Source: Rhodosorus marinus CCMP1338 (Eukaryota; Plantae; Rhodophyta). From it: a stretch of 64,000 nt of DNA. Both the position numbers and the translations under genes were made by a program. Below, piece by piece: positions 9,842 to 59,310 of the stretch. Under the pieces are notes generated by a model, which made no database searches, was not told where the DNA came from, and saw only the letters and a program-made list of their open reading frames with translations. The first letter of the stretch is position 1. Each line of letters starts with the position of its first letter. The stretch lies in the NCBI GenBank assembly GCA_029953675.1, contig JAMWBK010000003.1:1302001-1366000 (forward strand), in the 5' to 3' direction.

Positions 9842-10140
9842 AGGAGTACAACAAGGAGACCCCCTTGGACCTGCTCTACTCGCTCTTGCACTGGCACCTT
9901 TCCTCGAAGCACTACACAAAAGGTACTCGGAGGTAACTACTGTGGCTATTCAGGATGACATCACGCTAGTGGGCCCAACGGAGTCCCTTAAAGCGGCTCT
10001 ACTATGGAGTCAGAACACGCTCACTACAATTGGAGCACAACTCCAACCCGAGAAATTCACAATGTTTGGGCACGACCTTCCCTTGCTCGGCTGGTCACTC
10101 GAAACATGGCAGAGGTCAACGTTTCCCGAGAGGGAGTAAC
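9842..10140 (+). mobile_element. Reverse transcriptase core fragment, A-related
   Basis: GVQQGDP(L)GP...VAIQDDITLVGP...GAQLQPEK, with frameshift. Confidence 0.8.
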
Positions 10141-17600: not shown

Positions 17601-18392
17601 CGCGTCTCTGGCGAACATCGCGCCCGAATCAGGTCCGCGGCGGGCTCTGGATCGGGAGTCTGGCTGCGCGAACTGCCGACGTTGGAGCCGAAAAAGCTGA
17701 GCTCGATCGAAATGCTGGTGAATATCCGACAACTACTGGGGCTACCGATTCCAGGGCTGCGAACTACGGAAAAATGTACTCGATACCGTGGTAAACACGG
17801 AGCAAATGGAGTACAACGCTTTCATCATTGCCCCACGTCAACTGGCCTGTGGCAACGTAGGCATGACGAGATATGCACGGAGATCGCAAGGTGGCTGAAC
17901 CGGTGGAACTTTGTGGACATCGAGCAGGAGCCAGAGAATTACTTTGAAAAATACGGGCTACGGCCAGACATCATTGCTACGCATCCGAGGACATTTCAAC
18001 GGTATGCGCTGGACGTGACGGTTGTGTCTCCTTTGCCAGGGAAGTATCTGAGGCGTAGTCAGGAGGAGAGTGGATATGCAGCAAGACGTGCAGAGAGGTG
18101 GAAGAAAGCGCACTACAAGGAGGCGATGACGATAGAACACCCGGGTGACAAGTTCATCCCAATTGCAATAGAAACATTTGGACGGACTGGACCGATGGCA
18201 CAGGAGTTTCTGCGGGACAGCTGCAAGCATTTGTTGCACTGGAGCCTAGAACTGAGCAATATAAGATCGCAGATAAACCGGCAACTTTGGCGAGGTAATG
18301 CGGAGATAGCGCTAGGCGCTTTGCGCGTAGACCAGTTGGAGAATCCACCTCTGCCTGTTTTTTCTTTAGGACGTAGCATGAGACCCCGGTAG
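14619..18392 (+). pseudogene. Family A ORF2 (RT-ZnF-RLE), disrupted
   Basis: Stops near 14673, 15283 and 16535, frameshifts near 15650 and 17205, and internal duplications; the RLE segment is open over 17367-18392. Confidence 0.9.
15931..15957 (-). repeat. Perfect 27-nt telomere-like tract in reverse orientation inside the A RT gene
   Basis: AACGTAACCCCAGACTAACGTAACCCC is the reverse complement of GGGGTTACGTTAGTCTGGGGTTACGTT. Confidence 0.9.
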
Positions 18393-18472
18393 CGGGGTTG
18401 GAGTAAGCATTCCCCTAGATAGCGATAGAAGTAGTGTTACGCTGCAGTAGGCAGCTGCCCAGTAAAGCTTAC

Positions 18473-18493
18473 GGTTACGTCAGTCTTGGGTTA
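18473..18493 (+). repeat. Telomere-like repeat between two head-to-tail elements
   Basis: GGTTACGTCAGTCTTGGGTTA directly follows the A 3' terminus CCCAGTAAAGCTTAC. Confidence 0.8.
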
Positions 18494-21062
18494 AGTGTAC
18501 GCGGTTAGGGCGTTTGGGAAAGACAAAAGGAAAAGTTCGTAAGAGAGTCCGAAGATGATTGTGAGGGAGGTACGCGGGTCGTACCCTGAACCTCTTGTCA
18601 TTCAGGGCCCGGACCCCTCAGGCACCCGGGAAGTTTTGCAAAGGCACCAGCACCAGTCTGATGGCGACGTGCAGGAGTCACCGACGGAACCGCAAGCAGG
18701 CGATGTTCAAGCAAGAACGCGGACCGAGTCTGCAGCCGCAACCGACCCGGCAGCCACATTCTTGCATCAACTGCGTAGCTTCGACAGATGCTACCAGGAC
18801 CTGGGCATCGCTGCGTCCGAAATTACAGCCTTCTACAAAGCAGTTTTTCAACTGTACTCGCTGGTCAACAGCTCGCAAGAGCTGGAAGGCGTCACCGGAC
18901 GCCTTACGGAGTTGTCCCGGAAACCGGGTATGTGGGAAGGTGGAGCCGCTACTACGAATTCTGCACCATCTCCGCATGATCTCCCGCGACAGGCCGTAGG
19001 CAACCACCTCGCCCCCGAAACCCGTTACCGTAACGGTCGACTGCCAGGAAGTTATGACGTCCATGATTTAGGAACCCAGCTCCCTGCGCCCCAGGGAGGG
19101 ACAGGTGTCCGGGATCTAGGACACTATGCGGAGGCATTCCCAGCCATCGGGGAGGGCCCTACAAGGCCAACCTTCGCCGAGTTTGCAGCTCAGAAAGAAC
19201 CAGGGAGAGGAGAAGATGCTCGTTCCAGAACTTCTGGACGCCCCGGACCCCAGACCCAGCAGGCTGCCCTGCGGCAACTGCACGCTACGGTCGGGGGGTC
19301 TGGCTGGGGACCCGATGTTGCCCCAGTCCTCGCGACGCTACGGAATGTCCGACCCCCAAGGCTGGATGAGGTGGCCCCTGCGCCAAATTATCGCCCGAAT
19401 TTGAATTGCCCCAGAGTGGCAGCGTTGGCAGAAGGCAGTCAACATCAGGTCAATCAACATGAACCTGTCCCGGGACAGGCGAGGGCGTTTGCTTCTGCGC
19501 CGGACAGTACGACGTTGGGGAGCGGCAGGCCGGGCCAAAACGCGCTTCAGCGCTCCGGGACTCGAGGCAATGGTGGTGGTGACTGTGCGGCAACCGGTGT
19601 GGAGGAGACTGCAGCTGTGGACTTCCCTCTCTTGGACCAGCCCTCAGGTGGTCACCAGCTCCCGGCTACTGCGGGGGCACGTGGCGGCCGCAAAGGGGGG
19701 CGCTTCGTACGCATCATTCTTGCGGAAGGGCACCACTGCCACACGTACGGCGGCTATCTCCGTTTCATACCATCTCGCGAGCCTCAGGATGGACCTGTGG
19801 AGACCACTCTCCAATTTCTGTGGGTGCGAAATGTCCGGCCCCAGACTACACGAGGACAGGTTCCGTCTATGCGAGATTTCCGGGACACTTTTGCGGAATC
19901 GTTAGGGTGCAGCCGGGGTGATTTCTTCTTCGCAAACTATGAGGGCCGCGATGTGCTGTTTTTGGTCTCCGAAACCGCCGCCAAGTACCTGGAGGCCTTG
20001 CTGGCGAAGCCTACCGAGCAGTGGCCTGAGAGCGCCCGGTGGCTGCGCTGCAACCCGCAGGTGGTTTTGCACATCGATTTTGACCGTTTCTCGGGCAATT
20101 TCCTGTCTCCGGGAGAAACGGCAGGGCTCTCTGAGCATGAGAGCAGCGTGAAGGCGGCAGCGATCCATTGGCTACGGATTCAGCGCCTTGACAGGATCTT
20201 GTTGGAGCGGTTCCGGTCGGGCCCTCGTCACCTGCGCATGGCGGTGTCCAGCCTCTTCGATCTGGAGAGGCGACTTGTGCTGACTTCGCGCTACAAGACA
20301 GAGCTGCAGCGGGTGGGGATTTTGGAGGGCTCTGCTTCCAGCACCACTTCCAGCGAGAGTGGTGAGGCAGGGGAGCAGACTGAGGGCATGGCGGTGGTTG
20401 ACGCCCAGGTTACTTTGCTGAAGCCCGCGGGATCCGTTCCGCGAGCCTCGCGGAGTGGGCGGCTCACGACTTTGGTGCGGATAGGAGGTAAGAGAGCGAG
20501 GACCGACTCCCCCGGGTCTAAGGGGGAGAGGCACGATTAGCGCTCCAGGCACGGCTGCGAGGTCGCAGCCTATGGATCTAAAGTCTTATGTCCTGAAGGA
20601 GGGCGGAGACTGGGGCATTTGGCGTACGCGTTTTCGGAGTTGGCTCCGGCGGTGGATTTCTTTGGAAGGAGGCTCGCTTCCCCTCCGTGGGGGCATTCCC
20701 CCAGTCGTCCTCCCTCGTGGAGACATTCTAGTAGCTGGAACCATTCTCGATTTCATCTTCACGAGCCTGGCTCGCAACATTCGGGACACAGTCATTTGGG
20801 TTTTTCTGGGGGTCATGCCGCGCCTGATTCTGGCCCCCATTCACACATCGGAGCGCAGATAGCGAGTACGAGACCGACTGGCCCTGTTCTTGAAGGGAGA
20901 CTTCGAAGTACTACAGCGCAGCTATTTGGCGTTGTCAGCACCATCGGCCCGTCGGACTCGGCATGGCACAGTGTCGCCCGTGCCGGCTCGAGTACAGAAA
21001 TTGGTAGCAGTGGGCGATTTAAGTCGAGCGGCGCGGGTTTTGGAGGGCCAGGCGCCTGTCCT
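18494..21062 (+). mobile_element. Chimeric element: family A 5' end fused to family B ORF1/ORF2
   Basis: 18555-19380 aligns with A ORF1; ~19395-21062 is near-identical to the reverse complement of B at 35650-37310; single 661-aa ORF 18555-20540. Confidence 0.88.
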
Positions 21063-21414: not shown

Positions 21415-21456
21415 ACGTTAGTCTGAGGTGAAAGTTTACGGTTACGTTAGTCTGGG
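21415..21456 (+). repeat. Telomere-like repeats interrupted by an 11-nt A-type 3' tail
   Basis: ACGTTAGTCTGAGG-TGAAAGTTTAC-GGTTACGTTAGTCTGGG. Confidence 0.75.
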
Positions 21457-23399
21457 AACAAGCACAGATATACGGTGAGGTTTTATTAAGGAAAGCTTTA
21501 TGATCGAGGAGACGCTGGGACAGTACCCAGCACCTCTCCGCCACCCGGGCACCAACGGCCCCGGCCCAGCGCAGAGGGGATGGCGACACCGAATGGAAGT
21601 CGGAGGCCAGAACAGAGCGGCAGGACCACAAGCACCCAGGATTTCGAAGCAGCGAACACACAGGAGGCTTACAGGATGGAGACTCAAGAGGCAACTGGAC
21701 CCGCGGCAGCCTTTTTGCACCAACTTCGCGCCTTCGACCGGTGCTATCAGGACTTGGGAATTGGTGAAGCAGTTATCGCGGACTTCTAGCAGGCTATATT
21801 CAAATTCTACTCACGGATTAACAGCGTCTTGTCTCTCGCTTCTCAGGGTAGTTAGCCTCTGAATAAACGGATCATCGATTAACAGCACCATTGAACTCGA
21901 AGGAATTACCGCACGTCTCTCCGAGCTTTCAGCAATACCTTATATGTGGCACGGTGGAGCCGCAGCATCGAACCCCTCCCAAATCCTGCAACAGCACCCG
22001 CCGGCGGCGGCCATCAATCAACATGCAGCCGGAACGCGACTCAATCAACTACCCCTCAGGACAGGTGTCACGGTCCCAGTGGACCACGCAGAGACCTTCC
22101 CAGTCATCGGGAATGGCAGTACACAACCTACCTACGCTGAGTGTACGGCTCAGAAAGCCTCTGGGCGCGGAGAAGCAGCACAAACCCGCACAGTAGGACG
22201 CCCAGGGCCGCAGACCCAGCAAGCTGCCCTGAGACAGCTGCACGCTACGGTGGAGGGAGCTATCTGGGGACCAGAGACCACACTGGTCCTCGCCACGCTC
22301 AGGAATGTACGACCCCCGCGGCAGGATGAAGTGGCCCCATCAGACTTTGCAACGGTTCTTTGCCGAGCATCGGGGATCCCAAGCTCTTATGTGGTGCATG
22401 TGGACTTCATTGCCTCCCACGCCTGCCTGCTATGCCACCCAGACGCAATTCCGCTTTTCCAAAGCGCCATTTCACGGGGAGTTTTCAGGACCGGGATTTT
22501 CGGCTCTTTTACCCTGTGACACCCCGATCGGCATGTGACCCTGTCAACTGGCCAGGCGCCTGAGGCCGATAACCTACTGGGATACAACGAACGCCAACGC
22601 ATCGCACAGGCGGACATAGCGGCCCAGACACTGCAGAGGGCCATCGAGCAGATTATTCGCATCCGTTCGAGGCTTCGCAGGAGACAACTCTCTTTCAATA
22701 CTCTCGCGGCAATACACGAGTACCTGGACGCAAGACTCGAGGTCCTACAAGTCAGGCAACATCCCCCAAGTGTGCCCGGGGAGAGCGCGGAACCCCCAGC
22801 GCCTGCAGCGGCTACAAACGCAGACCCTGAAGCCTCGTCCCCTCCAGGCGACGTACAGGCAGACCGTGGGACAGTCGGCGCTCTGGGTGATTACAGCGCG
22901 ACATCCCAAATACCTCAAGAGGATGGACAAGAGGACAACCCCCACGCGGAGCTCCTCTCCAACCTGCTGGAACCTCCGCAACAGAAACGCTTGCGAGTAT
23001 CTGCTGACGGCACAGTCACGGATACAGAGATGACTTCAGCAGCCGTAGAGACTGCACAAGCTAACACTGTGCTGGAGGCTGACTTACACGCCCACCATCA
23101 CCAGATGGACACAGGAGACAGCCAGGAAAACACGACACAATAATGCCCAGCAGACGTAGAGGAATCAAACGACGACGGGATGAGTCTGCGCTAACGAGCC
23201 TCTGTTCTTCTCGGATCGTCAAGCCTGGGTCAAACGGTGGACCGACTTCGTTGACCAAGTTACGACAGGAGGCAGGCATTGGACGCGCCTAACACACTGC
23301 CCGGTACCCACACGGCGCTTTGTGCCCCGTGCCCACGTCAATACCTGGAGCCGCCTTCTTCGTGCAGCTCTTGAGATTTCCATGGACACCGCTGCACCA
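21457..23399 (+). mobile_element. Family A element, 5' half (ORF1 plus start of ORF2), 3'-truncated
   Basis: Homologous to 13048-14850; TAATG junction at 23141-23145; ORF1 broken by a stop and a 51-nt insertion. Confidence 0.88.
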
Positions 23400-23509
23400 G
23401 GGTTACGTTAGTCTGGGGTTAGACGTAGTGTTGCGCTGCAGTAGGCAGCTGCCCAGTAAAGCTTACGGTTACTTTAGTCTCGTATTCTGGGGATACGTTA
23501 GTCTGGGGT
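23400..23509 (+). repeat. Telomere-like repeats flanking a ~45-nt family A 3' tail
   Basis: GGGTTACGTTAGTCTGGGGTTA, then GACGTAGTGTTGCGCTGCAGTAGGCAGCTGCCCAGTAAAGCTTAC, then GGTTACTTTAGTCT...CTGGGGATACGTTAGTCTGGGGT. Confidence 0.88.
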
Positions 23510-24405
23510 AAAACAAAGTTCTCCGATCTAACGATTGTCGCTATCCATGACGATATTACGATCGTGGGACCCCTGCAGGAACTGAAGCAAGCACTAGCCT
23601 GGAGCCGAACTATGCTCCCATCTCTTGGGGCCCGCCTACAACTCAACAATTGCACGCTATACGGCCAAGCCTTGGCGACGGCGCGAGTCATCAATCGCGA
23701 GATACCTGGCATACATGTCACCCGAGAAGGCGTCACTATCCATTCGATCCCGATAGGAAACCGGGAATAAATCGAGCACGAGTGCCGTGCGCTTCAAAAT
23801 AAGCACGAAAAGCTCATCAAGGAAATAGCACAGCTACCGCAACATGAACTTAACGCGCAGGTCGCATTTTTCAGTTACTGCGCTGAAACGCGCCTAGATT
23901 ATCTGCTACGATGCCTAGCCTACCCGTTCGGCCGCAGTCTGGCACGGGAGGCGGATACCATGACGAGATATAATTTGGAAACCTTGCTCGGAGGCCTTGG
24001 TACCTCTGGCATGGAGGACGAGGAGCACCTGGGACACATCTGGGAACAGATTGCGCTGCCTTGCCGGTGGGGTGGATTGGGGTTCGCTACTCGACGGCGT
24101 ATCCAGCCTATCGCTTACTACTCGGCTTGGACAAATACCTTTCGAAGCAATACAGGCGACTGGCCTTACATCGCTGAGCTGCAGAGGCAGGTTTATACAG
24201 ACAGAAATCCGGCTACGAACACCGTGACACGACTACAATGGTCCACAGAACACCTTGCAGACCAGATACAATCATCTGCTCGAGCGATACAACGCAGGCT
24301 GCGTCCCGAAACTCCGCCCCGGATCAGAAGACTGGCCACCCTGCAGCAGACGAGGGAAAACCCCCCAGGAGACGCCCCAGAAGACTGTGGCGATTGGAAA
24401 AATGG
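23510..24405 (+). mobile_element. Family A internal fragment (RT motif C to pre-zinc-finger region)
   Basis: TIVAIHDDITIVGP...WEQIALPCRWGGLG; closely similar to 16325-17530. Confidence 0.88.
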
Positions 24406-28954: not shown

Positions 28955-29117
28955 TCAACCTCCACGCTGCCTACCACTCCTGATTGTATCCATCAGTGCT
29001 CAGTTTAAGTTTCTTGCAGTGGCGTGCTTGAGCCGTTTGGAACCTTCTCGGGGACTTTCATATTCGTCAATAATAAAGAGGTTTACCCTTTGCCCAAAAG
29101 GCAATGATTTTCTGGCT

Positions 29118-30470: not shown

Positions 30471-30995
30471 GCAGTCTCTGAAAAGTTTTATAAAAACTGT
30501 AACACAAAGTGCAAAAATCAAGCTGAGATAGTTCAGCTGATGTCATTATGAGAAAGCGCTGAGGCAATTAGGCTGGCGTGAAGAAACGCATAATCAGTCA
30601 TCACATACGGAACTATAAGGAAAAGAGAAAAGTACCTCCTACTAAAGGAAATCTGTCCATCCCCCCCCAAAAAAGAAGCTGATGGTTTGACATCTATCCA
30701 CTAAATTTCTGTTTCCGACGACGAATGGTTTAATCGACCAGTGTGGGGCCAGCGACGGATAAGTCTAGTTCATAGACATCGAAACACGCTAGAAAATTAG
30801 AGCGTTTGGACGCTGCAGAATCTCCATATTAATAATAAAGAGACTTAACCAGTATGAAAGTCTCCGACGCGTGGAGCCTACAGTCACTCAGGTCATTTGC
30901 TATTGGCGGAACGAGGTACATTTCTGGAAGGAAAGGCGGGTCTACTTAATTTCAATAGAAAACAAAATGGGGAGCAAAAACTGCACTTTCTAAAT

Positions 30996-31516: not shown

Positions 31517-32347
31517 ATGATGAGGTTGTGTGGTTTAATTTTTGTCACTCTGGTAGGGTTCACGATGGCGGTTCCATTGATGGAGAAAATTCATCTTGCG
31601 GAGACGGTAGGTTTCGTTCAAGGTGCGGAGCCGGCCGCCCGCGTTCAAACTACGGAGACGGTAGACCGCGTTCAAGGTGCGGAACCGGCAGCCTTCGTGG
31701 ATGCGGAGACGGTAGGCTTCGGTCAAGGTGCGGAGCCGGCAGCCCACGTTCAAGGTGCGGAGCCGGCAGCCCACGTTCAAGGTGCGGAGCCGGCAGCCCA
31801 CGTTCAAGGTGCGGAGCCGGCAGCCCACGTTCAAGCTGCGGAGACGGTAGACCCCGTTCAAGGTACTACGATATTCAGCTGGAATCCGGTATACGCAATT
31901 AATTGGACTGATTTACCCGAAGTAGACTCGGTTCAAGCTGCGGAGACGGTAGACCCCGTTCAAGGTACTAGCGGATTCAGCTGGAATCCGGTATACGCAA
32001 TTAATTGGACTGATTTACCTGAAGTAGACTCGGTTCAAGCTGCGGCGACGGTAGACCCCGTTCAAGGTACTACGATATTCAGCTGGAATCCGGTATACGC
32101 AATTAATTGGACTGATTTACCCGAAGTAGACTTGGTTCAAGCTGCGGAGACGGTAGACCCCGTTCAAGGTACTAGCGGATTCAGCTGGAATCCGGTATAC
32201 GCAATTAATTGGACTGATTTACCTGAAGTAGACTTGGTTCAAGCTGCGGAGACGGTAGACCCCGTTCAAGGTACTAGCGGATTCAGCTGGAATCCGGTAT
32301 ACGCAATTAATTGGACGGATTTACCCGAAGTGCTCCTCGGGGCGTAG
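31517..32347 (+). CDS. Predicted secreted tandem-repeat glycoprotein
   Basis: ATG 31517 gives a signal-peptide-like MMRLCGLIFVTLVGFTMA; four 9-aa repeats (VQGAEPAAH) then five 34-aa (102-nt) repeats, each with an N-W-T sequon; frame fully open. Confidence 0.75.
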   Translation: MMRLCGLIFVTLVGFTMAVPLMEKIHLAETVGFVQGAEPAARVQTTETVDRVQGAEPAAFVDAETVGFGQGAEPAAHVQGAEPAAHVQGAEPAAHVQGAEPAAHVQAAETVDPVQGTTIFSWNPVYAINWTDLPEVDSVQAAETVDPVQGTSGFSWNPVYAINWTDLPEVDSVQAAATVDPVQGTTIFSWNPVYAINWTDLPEVDLVQAAETVDPVQGTSGFSWNPVYAINWTDLPEVDLVQAAETVDPVQGTSGFSWNPVYAINWTDLPEVLLGA

Positions 32348-32635
32348 TATTTACTAAAGTTCAGTAAGACCATAAAACAAAGTGCAAAAATCAAGCTGAG
32401 ATAGCTCAGCTAATGTGAGCCAATTAGGCTGGCATTAAAAAACGCATAATCAGTCATCACATACGGAACTATAAGGAGTTCGCTAGGAAAAGAGAAAAGT
32501 ACCTCCTATTAAATTAAATCTGTCCATCCCCCCCACCCCCCACCAAAAAAACCTGGTAGTTTTACTTCCATCTGCTAAATTTCTGTTTCCAGTGCGGGCC
32601 CACCGAGTATGAACGTCTCCGAAGCGTGGAGCCTC

Positions 32636-32889
32636 CAGTCACTCAGGTCACTCAGGGGATTTGCTAGTGGCGGAACGAGGTACATTTCTGGAAGGAAAGG
32701 CACATCTACTTAATTTCAATAGAAAACAAAATGAGGGGAAAAAAGACTACGCTTTATGCTGGAGGTGCGTTAAGATCGCTCACCTCTGGCATCCAGAGCA
32801 GTGTTCATACGTCATAGTAAGAAACCAGTCGGTGCTTCCTTGGCGGACAAAGATACCCCGTTCCGCAAATAGCAATGACTTAAGTGACT
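32636..32889. mobile_element. Second copy of the CAGTCACT-ended MITE
   Basis: Left CAGTCACTCAGG...GGCGGAACGAGG; right CCCCGTTCCGCAAATAGCAATGACTTAAGTGACT. Confidence 0.65.
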
Positions 32890-33065: not shown

Positions 33066-36000
33066 CTAATAACTAGGGAGAGAAGCATGCAACCCCAGGC
33101 GCCGATGGCGCGCCTCGGAAAGCATGTCGCTGGAATATCGCCAAAGGGAGACACTTAAACGCCTCAAGAGCGCCAAATATTCAGTAGGATGCTCAGCAAA
33201 ACATTTCCGCAACCACTCTAAACCCGACTTATCGACGTGACCAAAGCTTTCCACAATGAATGGCTGGAACCGGTGAGAGCGACCCTCAGCGCAAGTCAGA
33301 CTGGCCATGCTCTCAGCATACCGTCGTTCCTTAACTCTTCGAAGGGCTGAAGCCGCGGCCCCCCGGCGGCGGGCGGCTGCGGTGAGGTGGGCGCTGGCCA
33401 CGGGGCAGGTAATCGCAAGGTCCACATATGTTGAGCGTCTGGCAGCAGCGTCGGAGACGAGGAGATCGGCTATACAACGGGGCGGTGCAGAGTCCGAGAT
33501 GGATCTGGGCAGTTCCGACTCAACCTCAACCGTATGCCCTATCCGAGTCAAAAATTCGCTGAGGATGTACTTGAGGCGAGTGTGACGCCTCGTACGGAGA
33601 CCTCGCAACAGTCCGCAGGAACCCAGGAAGTGGTAGCCACAAGCGTCAATCCGGCTCTCACATCCCTGACAGAAAGACGGCCGATTAGAGTGCCACGGAG
33701 CCTGTGGCAAACCGAGATAGATCCGTGCGGCAGAACGGAACTGGAAAGCATCGAGACGATGACTCAATGACGACGGTAGAGTGGTTAACCACAAGTGCGA
33801 GAGGTGGCCTCCCATGCCGCGGAGACGAGCGGCAGTGGTAGGCGGCGTGAGAGGAGAATTGAGCATGACTGTGTGAGCGGCACTGTGTTGGCCCCAGGTG
33901 AGGCTATGTTGAATCACATCAGCGCGGGAGCTCCACAATCGGCTCAAACCCGGGTAGTCTGCAACAGGGGACCCGGGGCTAGCCTCTCCGTCATCGGCAA
34001 GAACTCGGTCGAGGGGACAATCCTCAATCGCTTCAGCTCGTCCCCATAACAGCTCCCTCCAGGAACGAAAGCGGGACCGATTTGCGTCCGGCACGGCGTT
34101 GCACCTCCTGAACGCGTGTTGAAGACAATCATAAATTGTCAAAAGCGGGGGCGGCAGGGTCACTGGATCCTCGTTGGTCAAAGCTCGAGCCAAGAGGCAG
34201 GCACTTCGCATCTGGAAGGTCACCAACGTTCGCAGCGCGGTAGCCCAGGAGGCAACCGCCGCTGGCGAGCATACCAGCCCACGGTCTGCGACGCCGAATC
34301 CCCTAATCGCAACGGTAGAGCGATCTGTGCACGAATTAAGTCCCTGTCGGGAGCAGCTTCAAGATCGAGGGGCTCATCCAAGAGCGTTCCCCAGTGTTGC
34401 AGGGTCATTTCGTCGGCTGTAGCCGCGATCCACGAGCCCCAAGCTGGAGGCAGGCTGCGCAACCAGTAGTTGAGTCTGGGACCGGCACAAAAGCGGGAAA
34501 GCAAGCAGGCCGATTGCAGCATGCTGTCGGGTAGGTGCTCAATGGCGTCGGTGAGTTGCTTGTGCCGTGCCAAAACTCGCTCGCAGGATGCTTGGACAAA
34601 GTTGTCAGTCCCCAATCCGACGCCGTGGTGTTCGAACCCTTCACGTTCGCTGATTAGTCGCAGAGTGGGTGGCAAAGAGTTCAGCGACACGTCCCTCGCG
34701 GGGAGAAAGCGACATTTTTCTGTTTCCACAGTCAAACCGACGCGACGTGCAATCGCTTCGATCGCGGTCAGTCCCCTAGCCAGGGTGTCAGGGGTGCCCA
34801 GCAATGTTACGTCATCGTGGTACGCGCAGATTCGAAGATCCGAGACCTCAGTCGAAAGACGTAAAAGTACGAGCTGTAGGGCACAGGCATGAAGAAGAGG
34901 TCCGCAAGGGTCGCCTTGTTGGACGCCAGTATGTGCTTGAAAAACAGTGCCCTCCGTTGTCAAGTAGGGGAGGCTCTCCCCTCCGTAAATACCCGATAGA
35001 AACGGCCACGCCTCCGGAAACACACGTCGGAGCACCTCTAGCGCATGCGTCCGCGACACGCTGTTGAATGCGTTCCGGAAATCAACCACCAAGACTCCCC
35101 AATCCGGCCTACTGGCGCGTTCTAGCTCGATCCCATGGGTGATCAGTTCGCAACCCCCAGAAAATCCCACCCCTACTTGCAAGGGCGCCATAAAAGCTGT
35201 GACGCGCTGGCGAAGGCGCTGGCATAGCCACCTCCCGGCTAACTTCCGTAGGCTCTCCACCATCCCGATCGGCCGGAGACGCGGGTGGGCCGGCTGGTGG
35301 TCAGGTTTCGTGAGCAAGCAAAGCTGTGCCTGCCGGAGATGTTCCCATGGCGCAGACGCACCCGATACGCCCTGGAACAACTTGTTAAGGATCCTCAGAA
35401 GCGCGCTCTGGCCAGGCTGGCTCAGGGCCTGCAATAGCTCTGTTCTTAGTCCGGAGGGTCCGGGACAGCGTCCCCGACGCGAGGTAGGAAGCAAATCCTC
35501 CAGGTCAGACTCACTGAGCGTCAGATCGATGCGAAACCTGGCCAACTCCGGACGGTCCAAGAATACCTCGAATTCAGGGGACAAATCCACGTCGGACTCA
35601 GGGAACAAAGACGACACCGTCTGGGCGAGACTATCATCGTAGGGGAGGACAGGCGCCTGGCCCTCCAAAACCCGCGCCGCTCGACTTAAATCGCCCACTG
35701 CTACCAATTTCTGTACTCGAGCCGGCACGGGCGACACTGTGCCATGCCGAGTCCGACGGGCGGGTGGTGCTGACGACGCCAAATAGCTGCGCTGTAGTAC
35801 TTCGAAGTCTCCCTTCAAGAACAGGGCCAGTCGGTCTCGTACTCGCCATCTGCGCTCCGATGTGTGAATGGGGGCCAGAATCAGGCGCGGCATGACCCCC
35901 AGAAAAACCCAAATGACTGTGTCCCGAATGTTGCGAGCCAGGCTCGTGAAGATGAAATCGAGAATGGTTCCAGCTACTAGAAGGTCTCCACGAGGAAGGA

Positions 36001-36136
36001 CGACTGGGGGAATGCCCCCACGGAGGGGAAGCGAGCCTCCTTCCAAAGAAATCCACCGCCGGAGCCAACTCCGAAAACGCGTACGCCAAATGCCCCAGTC
36101 TCCGCCCTCCTTCAGGACATAAGACTGTAGATCCAT
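33066..36136 (-). pseudogene. Family B ORF2 (RT-ZnF-RLE) with one frameshift
   Basis: RPIGMVE, VDFRNAFNS, GVQQGDPCGP, AYHDD, C-x2-C...H-x3-C, RRHTRL, IADLL, FQPFIVESFG; a 1-bp loss near 34290 at the LGGFG motif. Confidence 0.92.
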
Positions 36137-36167
36137 AGGCTGCGACCTCGCAGCCGTGCCTGGAGCG

Positions 36168-37577
36168 CTAATCGTGCTTCTCCCCCTTAGACCCGGGGGA
36201 GTCGGTCCTCGCTCTCTTACCTCCTATCCGCACCAAAGTCGTGAGCCGCCCACTCCGCGAGGCTCGCGGAACGGATCCCGCGGGCTTCAGCAAAGTAACC
36301 TGGGCGTCAACCACCGCCATGCCCTCAGTCTGCTCCCCTGCCTCACCACTCTCGCTGGAAGTAGTGCTGGAAGCAGAGCCCTCCAAAATCCCCACCCGCT
36401 GCAGCTCTGTCTTGTAGCGCGAAGTCAGCACAAGTCGCCTCTCCAGATCGAAGAAATTGGAAACCGCCATGCGCAGGTGACGAGGGCCCGACCGGAACCG
36501 CTCCAACAAGATCCTCTCAAGGCGCTGAATCCGTAGCCAATGGATCGCTGCCGCCTTCACGCTGCTCTCATGCTCAGAGAGCCCTGCCGTTTCTCCCGGA
36601 GACAGGAAATTGCCCGAGAAACGGTCAAAATCGAAGTGCAAAACCACCTGCGGGTTGCAGCGCAGCCACCGGGCGCTCTCAGGCCACTGCTCGGTAGGCT
36701 TCGCCAGCAAGGCCTCCAGGTACTTGGCGGCGGTTGCGGAGACCAAAAACAGCACATCGCGGCCCTCATAGTTTGCGAAGAAGAAATCACCCCGGCTGCA
36801 CCCTAACGATTCCGCAAAAGTGTCCCGGAAGTCTCGCATAGACGGAACCTGTCCTCGTGTAGTCTGGGGCCGGACATTTCGCACCCACAGAAATTGGAGA
36901 GTGGTCTCCACAGGTCCATCCTGAGGCTCGCGAGATGGTAGGAAACGGAGCATAGCCGCCGTACGTGTGGCAGTGGTGCCCTTCCGCAAGACTGATGCGT
37001 ACGAAGCGCCCCCCTTGCGGCCACCACGTGCCCCCGAAGTAGCCGGGAGCTGGTGACCACCTGAGGGCTGGTCCAAGAGAGGGAAGTCCACAGCTGCAGT
37101 CTCCTCCACACCGGTTGCCGCACAGTCACCACCACCATTGCCTCAAGTCCCCGAGCGCTGAAGCGCGTTTTGGCCCGGCCTGCCGCTCCCCAACGTCGTA
37201 CTGTCCGGCGCAGAAGCAAAAGCCCTCGCCTGTCCCGGGACAGGTTCATGTTGATTGACCGGATGTTGACTGCCTTCAGCCAACGCTGCCACTCTGGGGC
37301 ATTTCAAATTCTCGTCCGAATTTGAATTTGACCTGGCCAGCAATCCCGATTCCAGCCCACCTAGCTTCTGGGTGAGCTGAGGGAGCACTCCAGGATCACT
37401 CGCAGCCGTGATCAGGCTGGTGACAGCGGAGATAAGTGCACGCGCCTGGGTGCCAGAAGCGCCTTCCAAGTCAACCTCGGAAGAAAAGGTGCCGCAGCTG
37501 AGGCGAACACGGAGTCCCCCACCTGGCAGTGCCTCCTTGGGAGGAGGCTCCGTCGAGCGCGGAGATATCCCTACCAT
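36168..37577 (-). pseudogene. Family B ORF1 with one nonsense codon
   Basis: ORFs 37143-37862 and 36168-37109 are in the same frame; the TGA at 37143-37145 is CGA in the chimeric copy (19562). The start is inferred at MVGISPRSTEP. Confidence 0.75.
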
Positions 37578-42202: not shown

Positions 42203-44187
42203 CTGACATTCGAAGGGGGGTACAACAGGGTGATCCCTTGTCCCCTTTCCTACATGCCCGTGGACTACAACTCGTCTTGCTTTGTCTTCGCTCCGAATTC
42301 CCGCAGGTTCGTACGGTTGCATACCACGACGACGTGTGCCTCCTGGGGCCCCCCGATACTCTAGCGCTCGCTTATGATCGTCTCCGCTCCTTGGCTTCGC
42401 TCCTTGGCTTCGCGGGTTGACCTGGAGGTTAATCATCACAAATCGTTCTACTGGGGAGGTGTAGCTGCACAAGAGCAGCAGGTACCTGCGTCGTTCCAGG
42501 ATATTTGGAGACCGGATGGTTTCGTCCACTTAGGCATCCCCTACGGGCCGCCGTCCTTCGTTGAAGGCGAGTTGCTGCAGCTCCTCGGTAAGCACAGACA
42601 GCTGGTTGCAGAGCTTCGACGGCTACCTCCGGGCTTTCTCCAGTGCTCGTTGTTGCTGTTTCGGTATTGTTGCAGTCAGCGGTTAACCTATTGGCTTCGC
42701 TCACTTCCAACTCATTGGGGCCGGTGGTTGGCCACTCGTGCGGATGCTGAAAGTTTCCGTGAACTTGGGTATTTTCTCGATGAGGAGCTGAGCGCTCTGT
42801 CGCGACCCACCTGTGATGTTGTGCGCGCCCAGGTAGGCCTCCCATTGCGATTGGGGGGACTGGGCCTCTGCAACCGTGTTGTGGTCCAACCTGCAGCCGC
42901 AGTAGGGGCCTGGGGAACCGCACTTCCCACTTTGAGCAGTTTGGGTATCTCGAAGTTTCGCAATTTGATGGCGAGCCTCTCGCGAGGTGTCTTGCTTCCC
43001 AGCGTACCGGAGACCGCCCAAGACTTGTTTCTGGAGCTCCAAACCGCCCTGAATTCCTGTACTAGTCTCCCCGAAACCGTTCAACCCCGTCTTCCTGACT
43101 GGCGAGCTGTATTTGACCGCTCTCGAGGCTCCGCCCCGGGGATTCGTCCTGCGCCTGAACCTGTTCTAGGGGAGATTGACCCAGTGGTTGCCGCAGAAGA
43201 AGAAGTTCCAGTTGATCCTCCTGATGATTCCCAGCGCGCTGGGAGCCGAGCTCAAGCACGCACGGATGCGCTGCAAAATATCCTTTCTTGGGACTTGCAC
43301 CGTGCTGCATATGGCCGACTCCTCGCGCAGATGGTCTCATCTTCTCGCGCTCGCGCCCGCCTACGTAGTCTTGGAGGGGTTCTTAGCTCTCAGTGGCTCA
43401 TGACCGTACCGGCCTTTCCGCCACTCACACTGTCGGATTTCGAAGTTCGTACTTCACTGCGCTTATACCTCGGCTTACATCAGCCCCCCTGGCCGTACGA
43501 GATAGGTTCGTCGTGCCCTCTCTGCTCTCAGACTGAAGACAACGCAGATTTTGGCGCCCACCTGCTCGCTAGTTGCCCGGCGGTGAAAGGTGCTCGAACC
43601 AGCCGCCATACACGGATCTTGAACCTGTTATACCGGGAACTTCGGCCTATAGTCCGGCAAGCCGGTCTGGAAATCGAACGTGAGAAACCTTTACCCGTCG
43701 CGGACTTTCAAAATGATGAACGCCGTGTAGCCGACCTGGTGATCACCTGTGACGACAGCCGCCGTACCACATACGTTGATCTTGCTGTTCCTAACCCTCA
43801 AGCTAGTCGTTATCTCCCGGCTGCGGGGGAGCGCCGTGGATCTGCCGCCGCCAGCATGAGACGCCGCAAAGAGATCAAATACGCGGGGGCTTTGTCTTCC
43901 CCTGGTGTTCGTGCTTCGGCACTAGCACATCGCTTGGTACCCCTGATCATTGAGTGCTTTGGGTTCATGGACTCTGTTGGTTCTCGCTGGCTTCGGGAGT
44001 TGTTCCGCGAACGCCCTGACCGTCTTCAATCGTTATTTACCCGCTTAAGTTTCCTGCTGTGGCGCATGAATGCCGCTTTGATGTAACCATTCGTTCGTTC
44101 GATGTTGGAGGCGCCAGTTCTTCGCCGCACTTAGTCTTTTTTTCCCCTCGGGGTTTTTTCTTTCAGCCTCCGATTAAACCATTCGTC
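42203..44187 (+). mobile_element. Family C, 5'-truncated at the RT motif GVQQGD
   Basis: AYHDDVCLLG, PLRLGGLG, CPLC...HLLASC, RHTRI, ADLVI, LVPLIIECFG; 3' UTR T-tract and tail. Confidence 0.93.
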
Positions 44188-44971
44188 GAAAAAACTGAGT
44201 ACAGCAGAACTGCAAGTGAATGTACGACAGCTGTTGGGTTTGCCGATACCGGGAATACGGACGTCGGGGAAGTGTACTTGTTGTGGTAGTAGTCACGGTA
44301 CTAACAGAGTACAAAGAGTTCACCACTGTCCAACATCGACGGGACTATGGCAGCGAAGGCACGACAAAATCTGTACGGAGCTGGCGCGAAGGCTGAATCG
44401 CTGGAATTTCATCGACATTAAGCAAGAACAGGAGGGGTACTTCGAGAACTACCGACTAAGACCGGATATCATTGCCACTCATCCCAGGACGTTCCAAAGG
44501 TATGCGCTGGATGTGACGGTTACATCGCCACTCCAGGAGAAGTGCGTGAATCGGAGTGGGTCAGAGAACGGATATGCAGCGAAAAGAGCGGAGAGGTGGA
44601 AAATCGCGCATTACAAAGAGGCTATGTCAGTGGAGAAGGCAGATGACAAGTTCATTCCCATTGCGATCGAGAGCTTCGGGCGTACAGGACAAATGGTGCA
44701 AGAATTTTCTACGAGAAAGCTGCAAGCATTTGTTGCACCGGAGCCTAGAGCTGAGCGATGTTCGGGCTCAGATCAACCGGAAATTATGGCAGGGGAACGC
44801 GGAGATAGCGATAGGCGCTCTGAGAGTGGACCAGTTGGCGAATCCACTGGTCCCTGTTTTTTCTTTCGAACGTAGGATGAGACCCCGGTAGCGGGGTTAG
44901 CGTAAGCTTTTCCCTAGATAGTAGTAGCAATAGTGATACGCTGCAGTAGGCAGCTGCCCAGTAAAGTTTAC
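44188..44971 (+). mobile_element. Family A 3' fragment (ZnF + RLE + 3' UTR)
   Basis: KCTCCGSSHG...HHCP, RRHDKI, RPDII, FIPIAIESFG; ends CCCAGTAAAGTTTAC. Confidence 0.9.
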
Positions 44972-45587
44972 GGTTCACAGTGGCGGTTGCATTGATGCAG
45001 AAAGTTCATCTTGCTAAGAAAGTACAGGCAGATGTTCGGGCATGGGCATTCCCAGCAGCCGGGGTTGAGGTTGAGCAGGCCGAAGCTCGCCATGGGGTTG
45101 AAGAACCTGTAGCCCACATTCAGGTTGAGGTTCAGGAGGCCGGACCAGGGGTTCAGGTTGAGGTTCCCGGAGGCTGGATTGAGGGGCACTTAACCCGCGT
45201 TCAAGTTGAGGGGGCTGAAGCCGGGGTTGAGGTTGAGCACACCGAAGCTCGCCGTGAGGTTGAAGAGTCTGTAGCCCACATTCAGGTTGAGGTTCCCGGA
45301 GGCTGGATTGAGGGGCACTTCACCCGCGTTCAAGTTGAAGGGGCTGAAACCGGGGTTGAGGTTGAGCAGGCCGGAGCTCGCCGTGGGGTTGTAGAGCCCG
45401 TTACCCGCGCTGAGGTTGAGATCCCGTAGCCCGCGTTCAAGTTGAGGAGTCCGGAGCCGGGGTTGAGGTTGACGAGGCTGGAGCAGGCGTTGAGGTTGAG
45501 GAGTACGTAGCCGGCGCTGAAGTTGCCGTACAGTTCGTTGGAATTTCGGACAAGAGAGCATATTTTCAACAACTTCAACTAGAGTGA
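44972..45587 (+). pseudogene. Decapitated paralogue of the secreted repeat protein at 31517
   Basis: GGTTCACAGTGGCGGTTGCATTGATGCAGAAAGTTCATCTTGC aligns with GGTTCACGATGGCGGTTCCATTGATGGAGAAAATTCATCTTGC (31557). It has different V/E/G-rich repeats and a frameshift near 45425. Confidence 0.7.
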
Positions 45588-54126: not shown

Positions 54127-57100
54127 TTAGCCGGAGGCCTCAATTTTTACGAACACGGGGGGTTTCTTCAGAATATACTGGAAATTTGAGTTGGTAACAG
54201 TAATGGTACTCGCGTTAGTCTCGCTCGAGGAGAGGAGTACCGCCCCGTAGTTGAAATGAGTCGTCTTCTTGGGATAAATATCGTCGAGAGATACATTGCT
54301 CGACTCCTTGACGCTAACCACCGTGGATGTCGGTACGCCACCCTTTACCCTCACCTTCTGCATCGAAAAGTTGTTAACGTTATGGATTGAAACGACACTG
54401 GTTGTTGTTGTTGCATTGACGATGTTCAGGTCTGAAAACGTCACATTGCTCAAGTAGAACATGTACACGGGATCTTGGACCCTAGTCGCCGTGACGTTCA
54501 CGACTGTGACATTGGAATGTCCAAAATCATTGAGCTCCGTGACGACGGCGTACGCACTATCTTCGGCGTAGATGTTGCTCGCCCAAATATTATGATTCAC
54601 CTGATCTGGGTGACCGTGATCTTGGATAACCATTCCGTATCGGCAATTGTATGCCTGCACATTCTCAACAGTAACGTCCTGCGAACCATCGGTAACTTCC
54701 ACAGCTCCGTACTGAGCCGTTCCACTCGAGTTCCCATCCGAGGCTGTAATAGGGCAGTTCTCTGCGACAACATTTTCAATGGTAATGTTATAGGTCTTTG
54801 TCAGGCCCAAGTTGCCGGCCTTCCTCTCCACTGAGGCCACCCTGCTGGAAGCCCACCCTGCGTTTGACCTTCTGCCGCCGACTCTTGAGCACCCTTCCTC
54901 CCCTCGCCCTGTCTCCGAGGCTCGTGACACCGACATGGCAGAAGCACCATCGGCCTCTCCGAATCCGCTGGCTCTGGACACCCTCAGTCAAGACTCCGCT
55001 GCTGAAAACCCTGTGTCTACTTTCTTCAGGTCTTTTAGTTCCTTCGTGCGCCCTCCACGTGAGCGTCGTGCGGCTCCTGAGCCTCCCTCCGAGGCACCTC
55101 CTCCGGATATTCGATCTGCCTTCCCGACTGAGGGGAGGCCCGATGTCTGAGTCTTCCTCCTCCGCGTGCGTGTCGTCCCGGTTACCCCTGTTTACCAGTG
55201 ACCGCTCAGCCTGGCATGAGCGTGTTCTCTCGTGGTTTTCGCACCTTGTCGCCTCCTACCCGGACGGTTCCCTTCCCCTTTGTCGTCAGAGCACGGCCGT
55301 ACGGCTCCCTCGTCGACTTCATAAGCCCCTAGGATTGGTGTTGGATTTTCTCTGGCAGCAGGTCGCCGCGAACCCTCACTGCTCTCTTCGCTGGGAACTC
55401 TTGTTCTTTTTTCCCCGCCTCGTGCTCACCTCCTCTACCGTCCCCCTCAACCCACATCCTCGCCGGGTCCACCCTCGCCGAAAACTGCAAATGTTCCTTT
55501 CCGGCGACTTTGAGGACTTCGAACGTCTTTATTTCGCTTCTCTCTCTTCCTTTTCTCCTAGTGCTTCCTCAGCTTTTAGGTCTTCTCGACAGAATCGGGC
55601 GCGTCACACGGTGGCAGGCGGTGATCTGCGGCGGGCAGCCGGGATCCTCCAGCAGCGGCAACCTGTGGTTCCATACTCCGATGATCTTTCTTCACCGCTC
55701 CGTTTGCTCTTTCCCTCGGAAGGCTCCCCTTGGGACTCCTCGTTTGAATCAGTGTTGGAAGAGTACCGCGCCGCGCCACATCCCAGTGCGCGGTTAGCGG
55801 TCAATCTGGAGGCGGTGCGTGAGTTGGTTCATGATGCTCCGAAGGGCCGTTCCCCAGGGCCCTCGGGGCTGCGGGTGGAATATCTCCGTTTCTTAAGTGA
55901 TGAAGGTTTGAAGGCGTTGGCGTGGGTGGTCGAAGCGCTTGTGAATGGTGATCCCCTGTGTGAGTGTGCGTGGTTCTTGGTCGGGCGTTCGCAGTTGTGT
56001 CTGCTTTCGAAGCCCGGCCACACGGCCTCGAGCCCTGCTATTCGCCCTATTGGCCTGGTTGAGGTGGTCCGCAAATTGGCGGCGCGATGGTTAGTGAAAA
56101 TCCTGGTTCCCGAATCCCGCCGTTTCTTTGGGCACGTGCAGTTAGGCGTGGGCTATCGTGGTGGCTGTGAGTTGTTGTCTGTTTTACTCCGTTCGGAAAT
56201 GGCGTACTCCCCAGATTCTGGGCTCCTCTCTGTAGATTTTACCAATGCGTTCAACCGCGTCTCTCGTCCGGCTCTCATGCACGTGGTGCGCGAAGTCTTC
56301 CCTGTAGGCTTTCCCTTTGTTAGTAGACTTTATTCTCCGCTTGGTCGTGGGGCTACCTATGACACCCTTGGCGCTTCCTCACACACGTTTGCGGCGCGCA
56401 CAGGGGTACAACAGGGTGATCCCTTGTCCCCTTTCCTACATGCCTGTGGACTACAACTCGTCTTGCTTTGTCTTCGCTCCGAATTCCCGCAGGTTCGTAC
56501 GGTTGCATACCACGACGACGTGTGCCTCCTGGGGCCCCTGATACTCTAGCACTCGCTTATGATCGTCTCCGCTCCTTGGCTTCGCGGGTTGACCTGGAGG
56601 TTAATCATCACAAATCGTTCTACTGGGGAGGTGTAGCTGCACAAGAGCAGCAGGTACCTGCGTCGTTCCAGGATATTTGGAGACCGGATGGTTTTGTCCA
56701 CTTAGGCATCCCCTACGGGTCGCCGTCCTTCGTTGAAGGCGAGTTGCTGCAGCTCCTCGGTAAGCACAGACAGCTGGTTGCAGAGCTTCGACGGCTACCT
56801 CCGGGCTTTCTCCAGTGCTCGTTGTTGCTGTTTCGGTATTGTTGCAGTCAGCGGTTAACCTATTGGCTTCGCTCACTTCCAACTCATTGGGGCCGGTGGT
56901 TGGCCACTCGTGCGGATGCTGAAAGTTTCCGTGACCTGGGGTATTTTCTCGATGAAGAGCTGAGCGCTCTGCCGCGACCCACCTGTGATGTTGTGCGCGC
57001 CCAGGTAGGCCTCCCATTGCGATTGGGGGACTGGGCCTCTGCAATCGTGTTGTGGTCCAACCTGCAGCCGCAGTAGGGGCCTGGGGAACCGCACTTCCCA

Positions 57101-58857
57101 CTTTGAGCAGTTTGGGTATCTCGAAGTTCCGCAATTTGATGGCGAGCCTCTCGCGGGGTGTCTTGCTTCCCAGCGTACCGGAAAGCGCCCAAGACTTGTT
57201 TCTGGAGCTCCAAACCGCCCTGAATTCCTGTACTAGTCTCCCCGAAACCGTTCAACCCCGTCTTCCTGACTGGCGAGCTGTATTTGACCGCTCTCGAGGC
57301 TCCGCCCCGGGGATTCGTCCTGCGCCTGAACCTGTTCTAGGGGAGATTGACCCAGTAGTTGCCGCAGAAGAAGAAGTTCCAGTTGATCCTCCTGATGATT
57401 CCCAGCGCGCTGGGAGCCGAGCTCAAGCACGCACGGATGCGCTGCAAAATATCCTTTCTTGGGACTTGCACCGTGCTGCATATGGCCGACTCCTCGCGCA
57501 GATGGTCTCATCTTCTCGCGCTCGCGCCCGCCTACGTAGTCTTGGAGGGGTTCTTAGCTCTCAGTGGCTCATGACCGTACCAGCCTTTCCGCCACTCACA
57601 CTGTCGAATTTCGAAGTGCGTACTTCACTGCGCTTATACCTCGGCTTACATCAGCCCCCTTGGCCGTACGATATGGGTTCGTCGTGCCCTCTCTGCTCTC
57701 AGACTGAAGACAACGCAGATTTCACGCCCACCTGCTCGCTAGTTGCCCGGCGGTGAAAGGTGCTCGAACCAGCCGCCATACACGGATCTTGAACCTGTTA
57801 TACCGGGAACTTCGGCCTATAGTCCGGCAAGCCGGTCTGGAAATCGAACGTGAGAAACCTTTACCCGTCGCGGACTTTCAAAATGATGAACGCCGTGTAG
57901 CCGACCTGGTGATCACCTGTGACGACAGCCGCCGTACCACATACGTTGATCTTGCTGTTCCTAACCCTCAAGCTAGTCGTTATCTCCCGGCTGCGGGGGA
58001 GCGCCGTGGATCTGCCGCCGCCAGCATGAGACGCCGCAAAGAGATCAAATACGCGGGGGCTTTGTCTTCCCCTGGTGTTCGTGCTTCGGCACTAGCACAT
58101 CGCTTGGTACCCCTGATCATTGAGTGCTTTGGGTTCATGGACTCTGTTGGTTCTCGCTGGCTTCGGGAGTTGTTCCGCGAACGCCCTGACCGTCTTCAAT
58201 CGTTGTTTACCCGCTTAAGTTTCCTGCTGTGGCGCATGAATGCCGCTTTGATGTTGGAGGCGCGAGTACTTCGCCGCACTTAGTCTTTTTTTCCCCTCGG
58301 GGTTTTTTTTTCAGCCTCCGATTAAACCATTCATTCATTCAGTTGCCGGTAGAAATTTTCACCGCATCGCTCCTAATACCATTCCCGTAAATGTTTCGAA
58401 TGATTCCATTCCTAACAGGCACGGCTTGTGCAGTGTTGTTGGCCCGACATTCAATTCCGTCTCTGGACGAGTTGTAGAAATTGGCCCCGTCGATAAGGAA
58501 CTTGCTCCCCTTGATCTCCAGAAGTGCCGCGCGTTCAGACGGATCTACTGTTCCAAGGTTCCCGACAGCATTCAAATTCTTGATTGTCACTCCATCAGCC
58601 ATAATCCTTATCGCATTAATGGCAGCCCCGGGTACCAAAGTCACCGATATGTCCGAAAGCTTCAAGGGATTGCTTACTACCACCATCTCAGTTAGGTTCC
58701 AGTGGCATCCAGCCCCTGAGAGATGCGCGTTTTCAACCGCATTCGTCACTTGATCGTTGAGGGAGGCAGTGCAGTTAAGTTGAATGTGCCCATACGCTCC
58801 AACGGAGAATATGGAGCATACCGCGATCATCAGCTTTATTGCGGGTCCCATCCTCAT
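54127..58857 (-). pseudogene. Secreted right-handed beta-helix (pectin-lyase-like) protein gene split by a family C insertion
   Basis: N-part 58857-58341 (signal-like MRMGPAIKLMIAVCSIFSVGAYG) plus C-part 54809-54127 totals 1200 nt, an open 399-aa ORF (…KISTGN|LGLTKT…). It is rich in beta-helix-type N/V/I/T repeats and N-x-S/T sequons. Confidence 0.82.
54819..58340 (+). mobile_element. Longest family C copy (3522 bp, 5'-truncated in ORF1) with 9-bp TSD
   Basis: AGTTGCCGG at 54810-54818 and 58341-58349; ORF1 tail to 55150; ORF2 55143-58283 with three 1-bp frameshifts (~56540, ~57025, ~57725); tail CATTCATTCATTC. Confidence 0.95.
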
Positions 58858-59310
58858 AATGTTAACAAATTCCGTTCCGAAATACACTTTCTTCTCCTTC
58901 TTCTCTTGCTGTTGTTCCTGACCCCACTTCTTGTGATTAACTGTCGAGGAAAAGGCATCTCTATTTGTACATGTCTGTTCGGGTACCTTGGGAAACAATC
59001 CTCCATGGGCCCAAAACTGAGCTGGACAAGGTCCAACAAGCGAGAGCTGCCAGCCCGTTGACACTTAGCACCGGGGCCGCAGTAAATAATCATTCATTTG
59101 AGCTCTCTGTGCCCCAAAAATCGATGCAAGTCAGCACCTACTGGGGGCGCGGAGCGACATGGGCGAAGCCCCTGCAGCCGGCGGGGGGGGGGGAGGAAGA
59201 CACTCCAGTTCTATACTTAGCAGCAAACCACTTAGCAGCCCAACCCTAGCAGAAATTCGCCTTTTTAAACATGCTTAAATCTAGTCAAAATTCAAACATG
59301 TTTTATATTT

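Follow-up and report, generated by a model that had tools for sequence, protein, structure and literature searches.

How does a retrotransposon that elsewhere ends against one particular tandem repeat come to end against a protein-coding sequence? The question is raised by a junction in 64,000 nucleotides (nt) of the red alga Rhodosorus marinus CCMP1338 (GenBank assembly GCA_029953675.1, contig JAMWBK010000003.1, positions 1,302,001 to 1,366,000 of the forward strand), a stretch that we call the window and in which all positions below are counted from the first letter. The window is eukaryotic in character, with a G+C content of 46 to 60%, and is crowded with nested retrotransposons that lack long terminal repeats (non-LTR), mostly 5'-truncated, of at least three families, labeled A, B, and C. 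At 44971/44972, the intact 3' end of an A copy meets the signal-peptide region of a repeat-containing open reading frame (ORF). The explanation that we lean toward is an off-target event of target-primed reverse transcription (TPRT) of A at a four-base microhomology, GGTT, in this orphan ORF.

The A tail …CCCAGTAAAGTTTAC ends at 44971 and is followed directly by GGTTCACAGTGGCGG; the bases on either side are GTAAAGTTTAC (44961 to 44971) and GGTTCACAGTGG (44972 to 44983). The copy to which this tail belongs spans 44187 to 44971 (+) and comprises the 3' 785 nt of A, namely, the end of ORF2 and the 3' untranslated region (UTR). Positions 44187 to 44975 align with 17689 to 18476 of the reference copy at 74% identity, and the last 143 nt (44829 to 44971 versus 18330 to 18472) align end to end at 87%, demonstrating that the tail is complete to its last base. 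The terminal segment (44940 to 44971, +) contains a conserved hairpin, GCTGCAGTAGGCAGCTGC, followed by CCAGTAAAGTTTAC. This hairpin was predicted in all four of the copies that were folded, and the structure is a prediction, as no compensatory changes were found among those four.

The sequence beyond the junction is a truncated relative of an intact ORF at 31517 to 32347 (+; ATG at 31517), which encodes 276 amino acids with a signal-peptide-like N terminus and repeats of 9 and 34 amino acids. The truncated paralog (44972 to 45575, +) is without the first 13 codons; it is open to a TAG near 45427, and its repeats go on in another frame. BLAST aligned 44969 to 45014 with 31554 to 31599 at 87% identity over 46 nt (homologous stretch TAGGGTTCACGATGGCGG at 31554), the in-frame translation RFTVAVALMQKVHLAKK… of the truncated copy parallels GFTMAVPLMEKIHLAET… of the intact ORF, and the downstream 27-nt repeat units of the two copies are related. 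The position equivalent to the junction is occupied in the intact ORF by GGGTTCAC (31556 to 31563; GGGTTCACGATGG covers 31556 to 31568). A preliminary description of this DNA had read the A tail as running into the signal-peptide region of a repeat-protein paralog, in the same register as at true repeats. The alignment bears out the first point, and the second is confirmed by the GGTT found directly after the complete tail.

The true breakpoint lies between 44971, a C that is specific to A (G in the paralog), and 44976, a C that is specific to the gene (A in the repeat). The intervening GGTT (44972 to 44975, +) is found both in the repeat that A usually targets and in the gene, and possibly in the A RNA as well; it could be target DNA, a target-site duplication, or RNA templated. 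Under every one of these explanations, the sequence carried by the element beyond TTAC is limited to GGTT at most. The junction is a precise A 3' end set against non-repeat DNA in the register seen at repeat junctions. The nick is narrowed to five positions, 44971 to 44976, so that the cleavage site that the junction had been said to expose is bracketed rather than pinpointed.

Neither the truncated ORF nor its intact paralog had a homologue among 5.8 billion proteins, and we infer that the "host gene" in this case is a lineage-specific orphan ORF family, whose status as a gene has the intact 276-amino-acid paralog and its signal-peptide-like start as its sole support. The 3' flank of the intact ORF (32373 to 32744) is duplicated at 30500 to 30980 with 77 to 86% identity, just 5' of the preceding B tail, which suggests a local segmental duplication of the gene neighborhood.

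What A normally adjoins is evident from its other tails. The sequence …GCTGCAGTAGGCAGCTGCCCAGTAAAG(C/T)TTAC ends A at six places: 18472, 23466, 21444, 44971, 10146 (-), and the external Rhodosorus-like transcript L001. Apart from the tail at 44971, every one of these (5/5) continues with [G/C/A]GTTAC and then completes a 16-nt unit, GGGGTTACGTTAGTCT, in one register; the four in the window read [G/A]GTTAC, and L001 reads CGTTAC. Were the register random, four further matches to the first would have a calculated probability of (1/16)^4. These data show that A inserts at a fixed register and in a fixed orientation within the tandem 16-mer, with the G-rich strand following the tail at all five repeat junctions. 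The target had been described as a repeat of the heptamer GGGTTAC, but the window holds no match to (GGGTTAC)n; the real repeat is the 16-mer, in which the heptamer is contained and of which just 1 to 3 units, often degenerate, stand between elements.

The canonical 3' flank of A (18473 to 18518, +) consists of about three degenerate units (GGTTACGTCAGTCTTGGGTTAAG…), after which the next element begins with its 5' end. At 23399 to 23512 (+), 16-nt units are accompanied by a 47-nt A stub (23420 to 23466), after which more units follow, starting with GGTTAC. A still shorter stub of 12 nt (GTGAAAGTTTAC, ending at 21444) has units on both sides within 21433 to 21460 (+), and its 3' flank begins GGTTACGTTAGTCTGGG. 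On the minus strand, the tail of a divergent copy, A' (10106 to 11080), reads …GGTAAAGGATCC and is followed by AGTTAC and degenerate units (TCTCGGGAAACGTTGACCTCTG), as read by eye. Its junction, at 10146, was weighed as a possible second case outside the repeat and was rejected, since the flank reads as degenerate units.

The 16-nt units also sit before the 5' ends of elements and on both sides of A stubs. In addition, at 23380 to 23512, a 3'-truncated element (…CGCTGCACCA; …CACCA joined to GGGTTACG…) is directly capped at 23399 by G-strand units. Together, these arrangements indicate, independently of the junction at 44971, that the units are target or chromosomal DNA. They agree with the limit of GGTT on what the element can carry, so that the earlier argument that the flanking repeat is target rather than element is supported. 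The capping at 23399 looks like the addition of repeats onto a broken end, with the units later invaded by the 47-nt A stub, and it is the best hint within the window that the 16-mer is made by telomerase. A telomeric identity of the 16-mer is plausible, as suggested by its G-rich core GGGGTTA, its arrangement in tandem, and the way its units cap the element at 23399. A literature search on the 16-mer returned nothing relevant. Several families appear to use the repeat, not always in the A register. Between 8390 and 9845, short transposon fragments are separated from one another by a single 16-nt unit each (8393, 9186, 9653, and 9826), and the tails before these units vary (for example, …AATAAAGGCTAC before AGGGTTTACG and …GAGTATA before GGGTTAC).

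We propose that A normally integrates by TPRT at one register and orientation of the 16-mer GGGGTTACGTTAGTCT, the presumed telomere repeat. Judging from the junction sequences, the C-rich strand would be nicked around 5'-GTAACC^CC-3', and the 3' end formed there would prime cDNA synthesis that starts precisely at the 3' terminus of the A RNA. One such reaction, at 44971/44972, would have taken place outside the repeat, within the signal-peptide region of the orphan ORF. This site would have supplied GGTT (…AACC-3' on the primer strand), so that the A tail was joined to the gene in its customary register. A B element would afterward have inserted into the A copy at 44187, a deletion or recombination associated with B would have removed the rest of A together with the start of the gene, and the gene remnant would have decayed by frameshift. 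We judge this origin to be probable, if by no means assured, because, in the canonical register, homology to the gene starts 0 to 4 nt from an intact A terminus, and nothing would lead a rearrangement to break just at the end of an element. It also takes one event fewer than a deletion model, the loss associated with B being needed in either case.

Guidance of the reaction by GGTT was weighed against the base composition of the locus. GGTT occurs at a frequency per position of 0.0045 across the window, 0.011 in the paralog, and 0.036 in the truncated gene, and GGTT.?AC occurs at 0.05% of positions. As a single prespecified case, the match corresponds to roughly p = 0.005 to 0.04, which is better than chance, although not overwhelmingly so. 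Beyond GGTT, the site and the repeat have in common only an AC that is offset by a 1-nt indel. A longer mimic spanning the nick (TCTGG..GGTT.ACG) was considered and rejected, as its local alignment score was not significant. Of the telomere mimic that had been proposed for this site, the GGTT thus stands above chance and the wider likeness is unremarkable.

A number of observations weigh against off-target TPRT at a telomere-like site. By local alignment, 11% of random 31-nt windows are as repeat-like as the paralog site, and the gene family is rich in GGTT, which weakens the argument from coincidence. The junction at 44971 is the sole non-repeat A junction available. For the A copy at 44187 to 44971, the window offers neither a 5' junction nor a target-site duplication or empty site, and it likewise lacks the promoter and codons 1 to 13 of the truncated ORF. 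The B element that adjoins A has no target-site duplication either, though B normally makes one of 9 to 14 nt. As for the telomeric identity of the repeat, the window contains no long 16-mer array to back it, and the R. marinus genome paper mentions telomeres without giving a motif (PMC10250338). Apart from these observations, metagenome contigs scanned with a loose hairpin pattern, GCTGCRGNAGGNRGCTGC, gave chance matches only, none with an A tail or units. Exact-protein look-ups for the A ORF and for its relatives P0002 and P0003 yielded no further junction DNA except L001.

The fate of the other flank of A can be read from the B element at 42217 to 44186 (+), a 5'-truncated, non-site-specific long interspersed nuclear element (LINE) of the restriction-like endonuclease (RLE) type whose tail is of the (TTCG)n kind. 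The 3' end of this copy is complete (…CCGATTAAACCATTCGTCG at 44186) and adjoins A at 44186/44187, indicating that B inserted into A. The 5' end of B, at 42217, sits inside an unrelated C element of the minus strand, toward the 5' part of that element. This position and the missing duplication indicate that the two flanks of B are not contiguous, and a deletion or a recombination between B elements would have removed the rest of A and the DNA upstream of it. The locus had been presented as an insertion of A into a host gene; what it contains is a 785-nt A remnant cut by B, and the insertion as such cannot be demonstrated from it.

By contrast, a demonstrable host-gene insertion is provided by the full-length B element at 54819 to 58340 (+), which splits a minus-strand gene for a β-helix-like secreted protein. 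This copy has a perfect 9-nt target-site duplication, AGTTGCCGG (within 54810 to 58349), and when the flanks of the gene halves (58339 to 59064 and 54127 to ~54818, -) are joined, the …DAVKISTGNLGLTKTYNITIEN… reading frame is restored. Tails of B were recorded at 26114, 31210, 42028, 44186, 53200, and 58340 (+) and at 59311 and 48137 (-). They end in short (TTCG)n or (ATTC)n tracts and lie at unrelated sites with 9- to 14-nt duplications (for example, CTGCTCGCG… at 41824 and 42030). The use of unrelated sites by B shows that RLE LINEs in this genome are not all repeat specific.

The alternative that survives best begins with A placed upstream of the gene in an ordinary repeat tract and invokes a microhomology-mediated deletion from the first GGTT of the tract to the GGTT of the gene. 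By removing the tract, the intervening DNA, and the start of the gene, such a deletion would yield exactly the observed sequence. A 4-nt microhomology is typical of end-joining deletions, and GGTT is present at 1 to 4% of positions in the gene family. The region around the junction is also heavily rearranged, with deletions common, as seen in the noncontiguous flanks of B, an A copy that is 3' truncated at 27889, and the truncated element at 23399. For this route, however, the left breakpoint must hit the very first GGTT past the A terminus and not one within A or farther along the tract. The junction retains no trace of a repeat unit, ACGTTAGTCT being absent, and one more event is needed than for insertion. 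We regard this deletion as rather unlikely, with a chance that is nonetheless appreciable. A further candidate had its origin in a B tail ~300 nt upstream of the intact paralog: a duplicated unit of B tail plus gene, in which A would have deleted the ~345 nt between the two. It was rejected because the junction of B with A lies at the complete B terminus; the B copies behind this idea also differ in length (217 versus 1,970 nt).

Endonuclease-independent capture of A would place a break in the gene, expose a 3' …AACC end, and let that end anneal to GGUU in an A transcript that had read through its tail, thereby priming reverse transcription. L1 elements are known to insert at breaks independently of their endonuclease, with microhomology and deletions. 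Capture would account for both the GGTT and the missing 5' part of the gene, lost at the break, with no separate later deletion, and A transcripts do read through into the flanking repeat, as L001 demonstrates. On the other hand, the complete B 3' end at the point of A truncation ties the upstream loss at least partly to B, and endonuclease-dependent TPRT is expected to leave the same sequence. We assign capture only a small chance.

The mimicry could also be illusory, with GGTT being the last four bases of A or of its RNA, the insertion site arbitrary, and the GGGTT of the paralog coincidental. Every A copy has TTAC followed by [G/C/A]GTT, which makes an element-borne GGTT possible. Upstream of the stubs at 21433 and 23420 stands GGT or GGGGT, and downstream of them GGTT, a pattern that fits either a duplication or an element-borne GGTT. 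The paralog, however, has GGTT at the exact homologous position, for which the chance is 0.0045 window-wide and up to ~0.04 in the gene family. Moreover, GGTT borne by the RNA would still serve as priming microhomology, and this view would then merge with off-target TPRT. Pure coincidence is, in our estimation, very improbable. Healing of a chromosome broken within the gene was rejected, since the polarity is wrong and what is joined to the gene is the tail of an element instead of repeat units, as was the idea that the gene piece is a 5'-truncated retrocopy beside A, since it lacks poly(A) and its 3' side, which runs into a C-like fragment, bears no repeat unit.

Judged from its sequence, A is a LINE-type element of R2/CRE-type RLE architecture, with ORF1 followed by an ORF2 that contains the reverse transcriptase (RT), a CCHC knuckle, and the RLE. 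Its longest copy, at about 12.3 to 18.47 kilobases (kb), is rearranged. ORF1 of this copy (13048 to 14619) has no Pfam match, and among its RT fragments, that at 16001 to 16537 matches RVT_1 with 31.6 bits against a gathering cutoff of 29.6. The reference C terminus of ORF2 and the tail (17367 to 18472, +) are part of this ~6-kb rearranged A. The C-terminal domain consists of the CCHC knuckle and the motifs RPDI…ALDVTV…K..Y, and in the copy at the junction it is retained in an ORF2 remnant (44216 to 44875, +) that is open for 219 amino acids (CTCC…H…C, followed by RPDI, ALDVTV, and K…Y). The second Cys of the knuckle is mutated in the 18-kb copy and intact in the 44-kb copy, which preserves C-x2-C. 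A profile of the A, B, and C C-terminal domains compared with PDB matched the knuckle and RLE region of R2 (9nl2, E = 9e-8), with C-x2-C…H…C and the (R/K)PD and D-V-T motifs aligned. The RT of the sister family C has R2 RT as its best match (5e-11) and also matches L1 ORF2 structures.

The A C-terminal ORF (17367 to 18392) has only three database relatives, with identities of 62 to 77%; one is annotated as Rhodosorus marinus (a red alga; MMETSP), at 77%, and another, at 62%, is from a JGI sample. One relative, P0003, carries RVT_1. Whether ~6 kb, 785 nt, 47 nt, or 12 nt long, the A copies share one 3' end; they vary in 5' truncation and have no LTRs. RepeatMasker assigned 9.04% of the R. marinus CCMP1338 genome to "LINE/CRE" (PMC10250338, supplement), so that most of the LINEs of this alga are filed under CRE/SLACS. 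This label, given for the genome as a whole, is an indirect hint that A may belong to the CRE clade specifically. Within the long A copy, two 16-nt units in the reverse (C-strand) orientation form an inverted repeat patch at 15926 to 15963 between duplicated RT segments, and a perfect 318-nt tandem duplication follows at 16391 to 17028.

Among the neighboring elements, the ORF1 at 18555 to 20540 (+) is chimeric. Its N terminus (MIVREVRG…) matches the A-type ORF1s at 13048 and 52393 (-), and from 19397 onward it has 98% identity to the family C ORF1 region (35646 to 37311, -), so that it may represent a recombinant or template-switched element. The family C tails at 29108, 33012, and 37857 (-) carry a sequence resembling a hairpin, GCGTAGCGCT..AGGCTATGC, and then (A/G)TAAAG motifs, reminiscent of the A tail. 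Shared by the A and C tails near their 3' ends, (A/G)TAAAG is a possible signal for polyadenylation or for recognition by the RT. An ORF at 6627 to 7394 (+), with a signal-peptide-like start and a sulfotransferase domain (PF00685, E = 9e-8), is among the window's few apparent host genes.

Should off-target TPRT be correct, the junction is a natural experiment on the minimal target of a repeat-specific LINE. It bounds the true A 3' end to within 4 nt, which copies embedded in repeats cannot do. At the same time, it is a decayed and half-lost event amid a transposon graveyard and says little that is new on mechanism. Its wider context may outweigh it, because RLE LINEs that target telomere repeats, described in fungi (MoTeR and FoTeR), would be extended to red algae, and because that context points to a possible 16-nt telomere unit, which is of more interest than the junction. 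In its fullest form, the proposal would be that GGGGTTACGTTAGTCT is the telomerase-made repeat of Rhodosorus-like red algae, that several RLE LINE families use it in one register, and that four bases, GGTT, suffice for A priming. We offer this tentatively, as a possibility that we doubt more than we believe. If it is true, a 16-nt telomere unit would be unusually long outside yeasts, and A would choose its sites largely by RNA-DNA annealing and not by endonuclease recognition.

Several known systems resemble A in part. MoTeR1 and MoTeR2 of Magnaporthe oryzae and the FoTeRs of Fusarium oxysporum target telomere repeats and encode a CRE/SLACS-like RT and an endonuclease that resembles a restriction enzyme (REL-endo); MoTeR arrays are head to tail, with tracts of half a unit to >20 units between copies (PMC7367193). 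Like MoTeR, A has an RT and RLE, head-to-tail arrays, variable 5' truncation, and short repeat tracts between copies, and interstitial telomere-like tracts accompany rearrangements in both. A differs in that its target is a 16-nt unit and not TTAGGG, its host is a red alga, and no telomere-like run is seen at its 5' end. In addition, the 5' ends of MoTeR are reported to face the chromosome end, whereas the polarity of A would be opposite if the unit is the telomere repeat, the A 3' end being followed by the G-rich strand. That polarity, element and then G-rich strand, is shared with SART1 of Bombyx mori, and A also resembles SART1 and TRAS1, which are TTAGG-specific LINEs, in its fixed register and orientation. 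In SART1 and TRAS1, a short repeat-derived sequence at the 3' end of the RNA aids precise initiation. These elements have an APE-type endonuclease and poly(A) tails, however, and A has a C-terminal RLE and no poly(A).

With R2, which is specific for 28S rDNA, A shares the CCHC knuckle and RLE by profile, RT similarity, and a precise 3' junction without poly(A). TPRT that starts from a defined 3' UTR structure would be a further feature in common. Rare R2 copies are found at noncanonical sites with partial target similarity. Unlike A, R2 has another target and a single ORF with N-terminal zinc finger and Myb domains; A has a separate ORF1 and no recognized zinc finger or Myb domain. CRE1, CRE2, SLACS, and CZAR of trypanosomatids are likewise RLE-type elements with specificity for a tandem-repeat site, although theirs is the spliced-leader gene and that of A is not. 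Seen beside MoTeR, SART, and R2, the A junction is an unexceptional side product of a familiar type of element.

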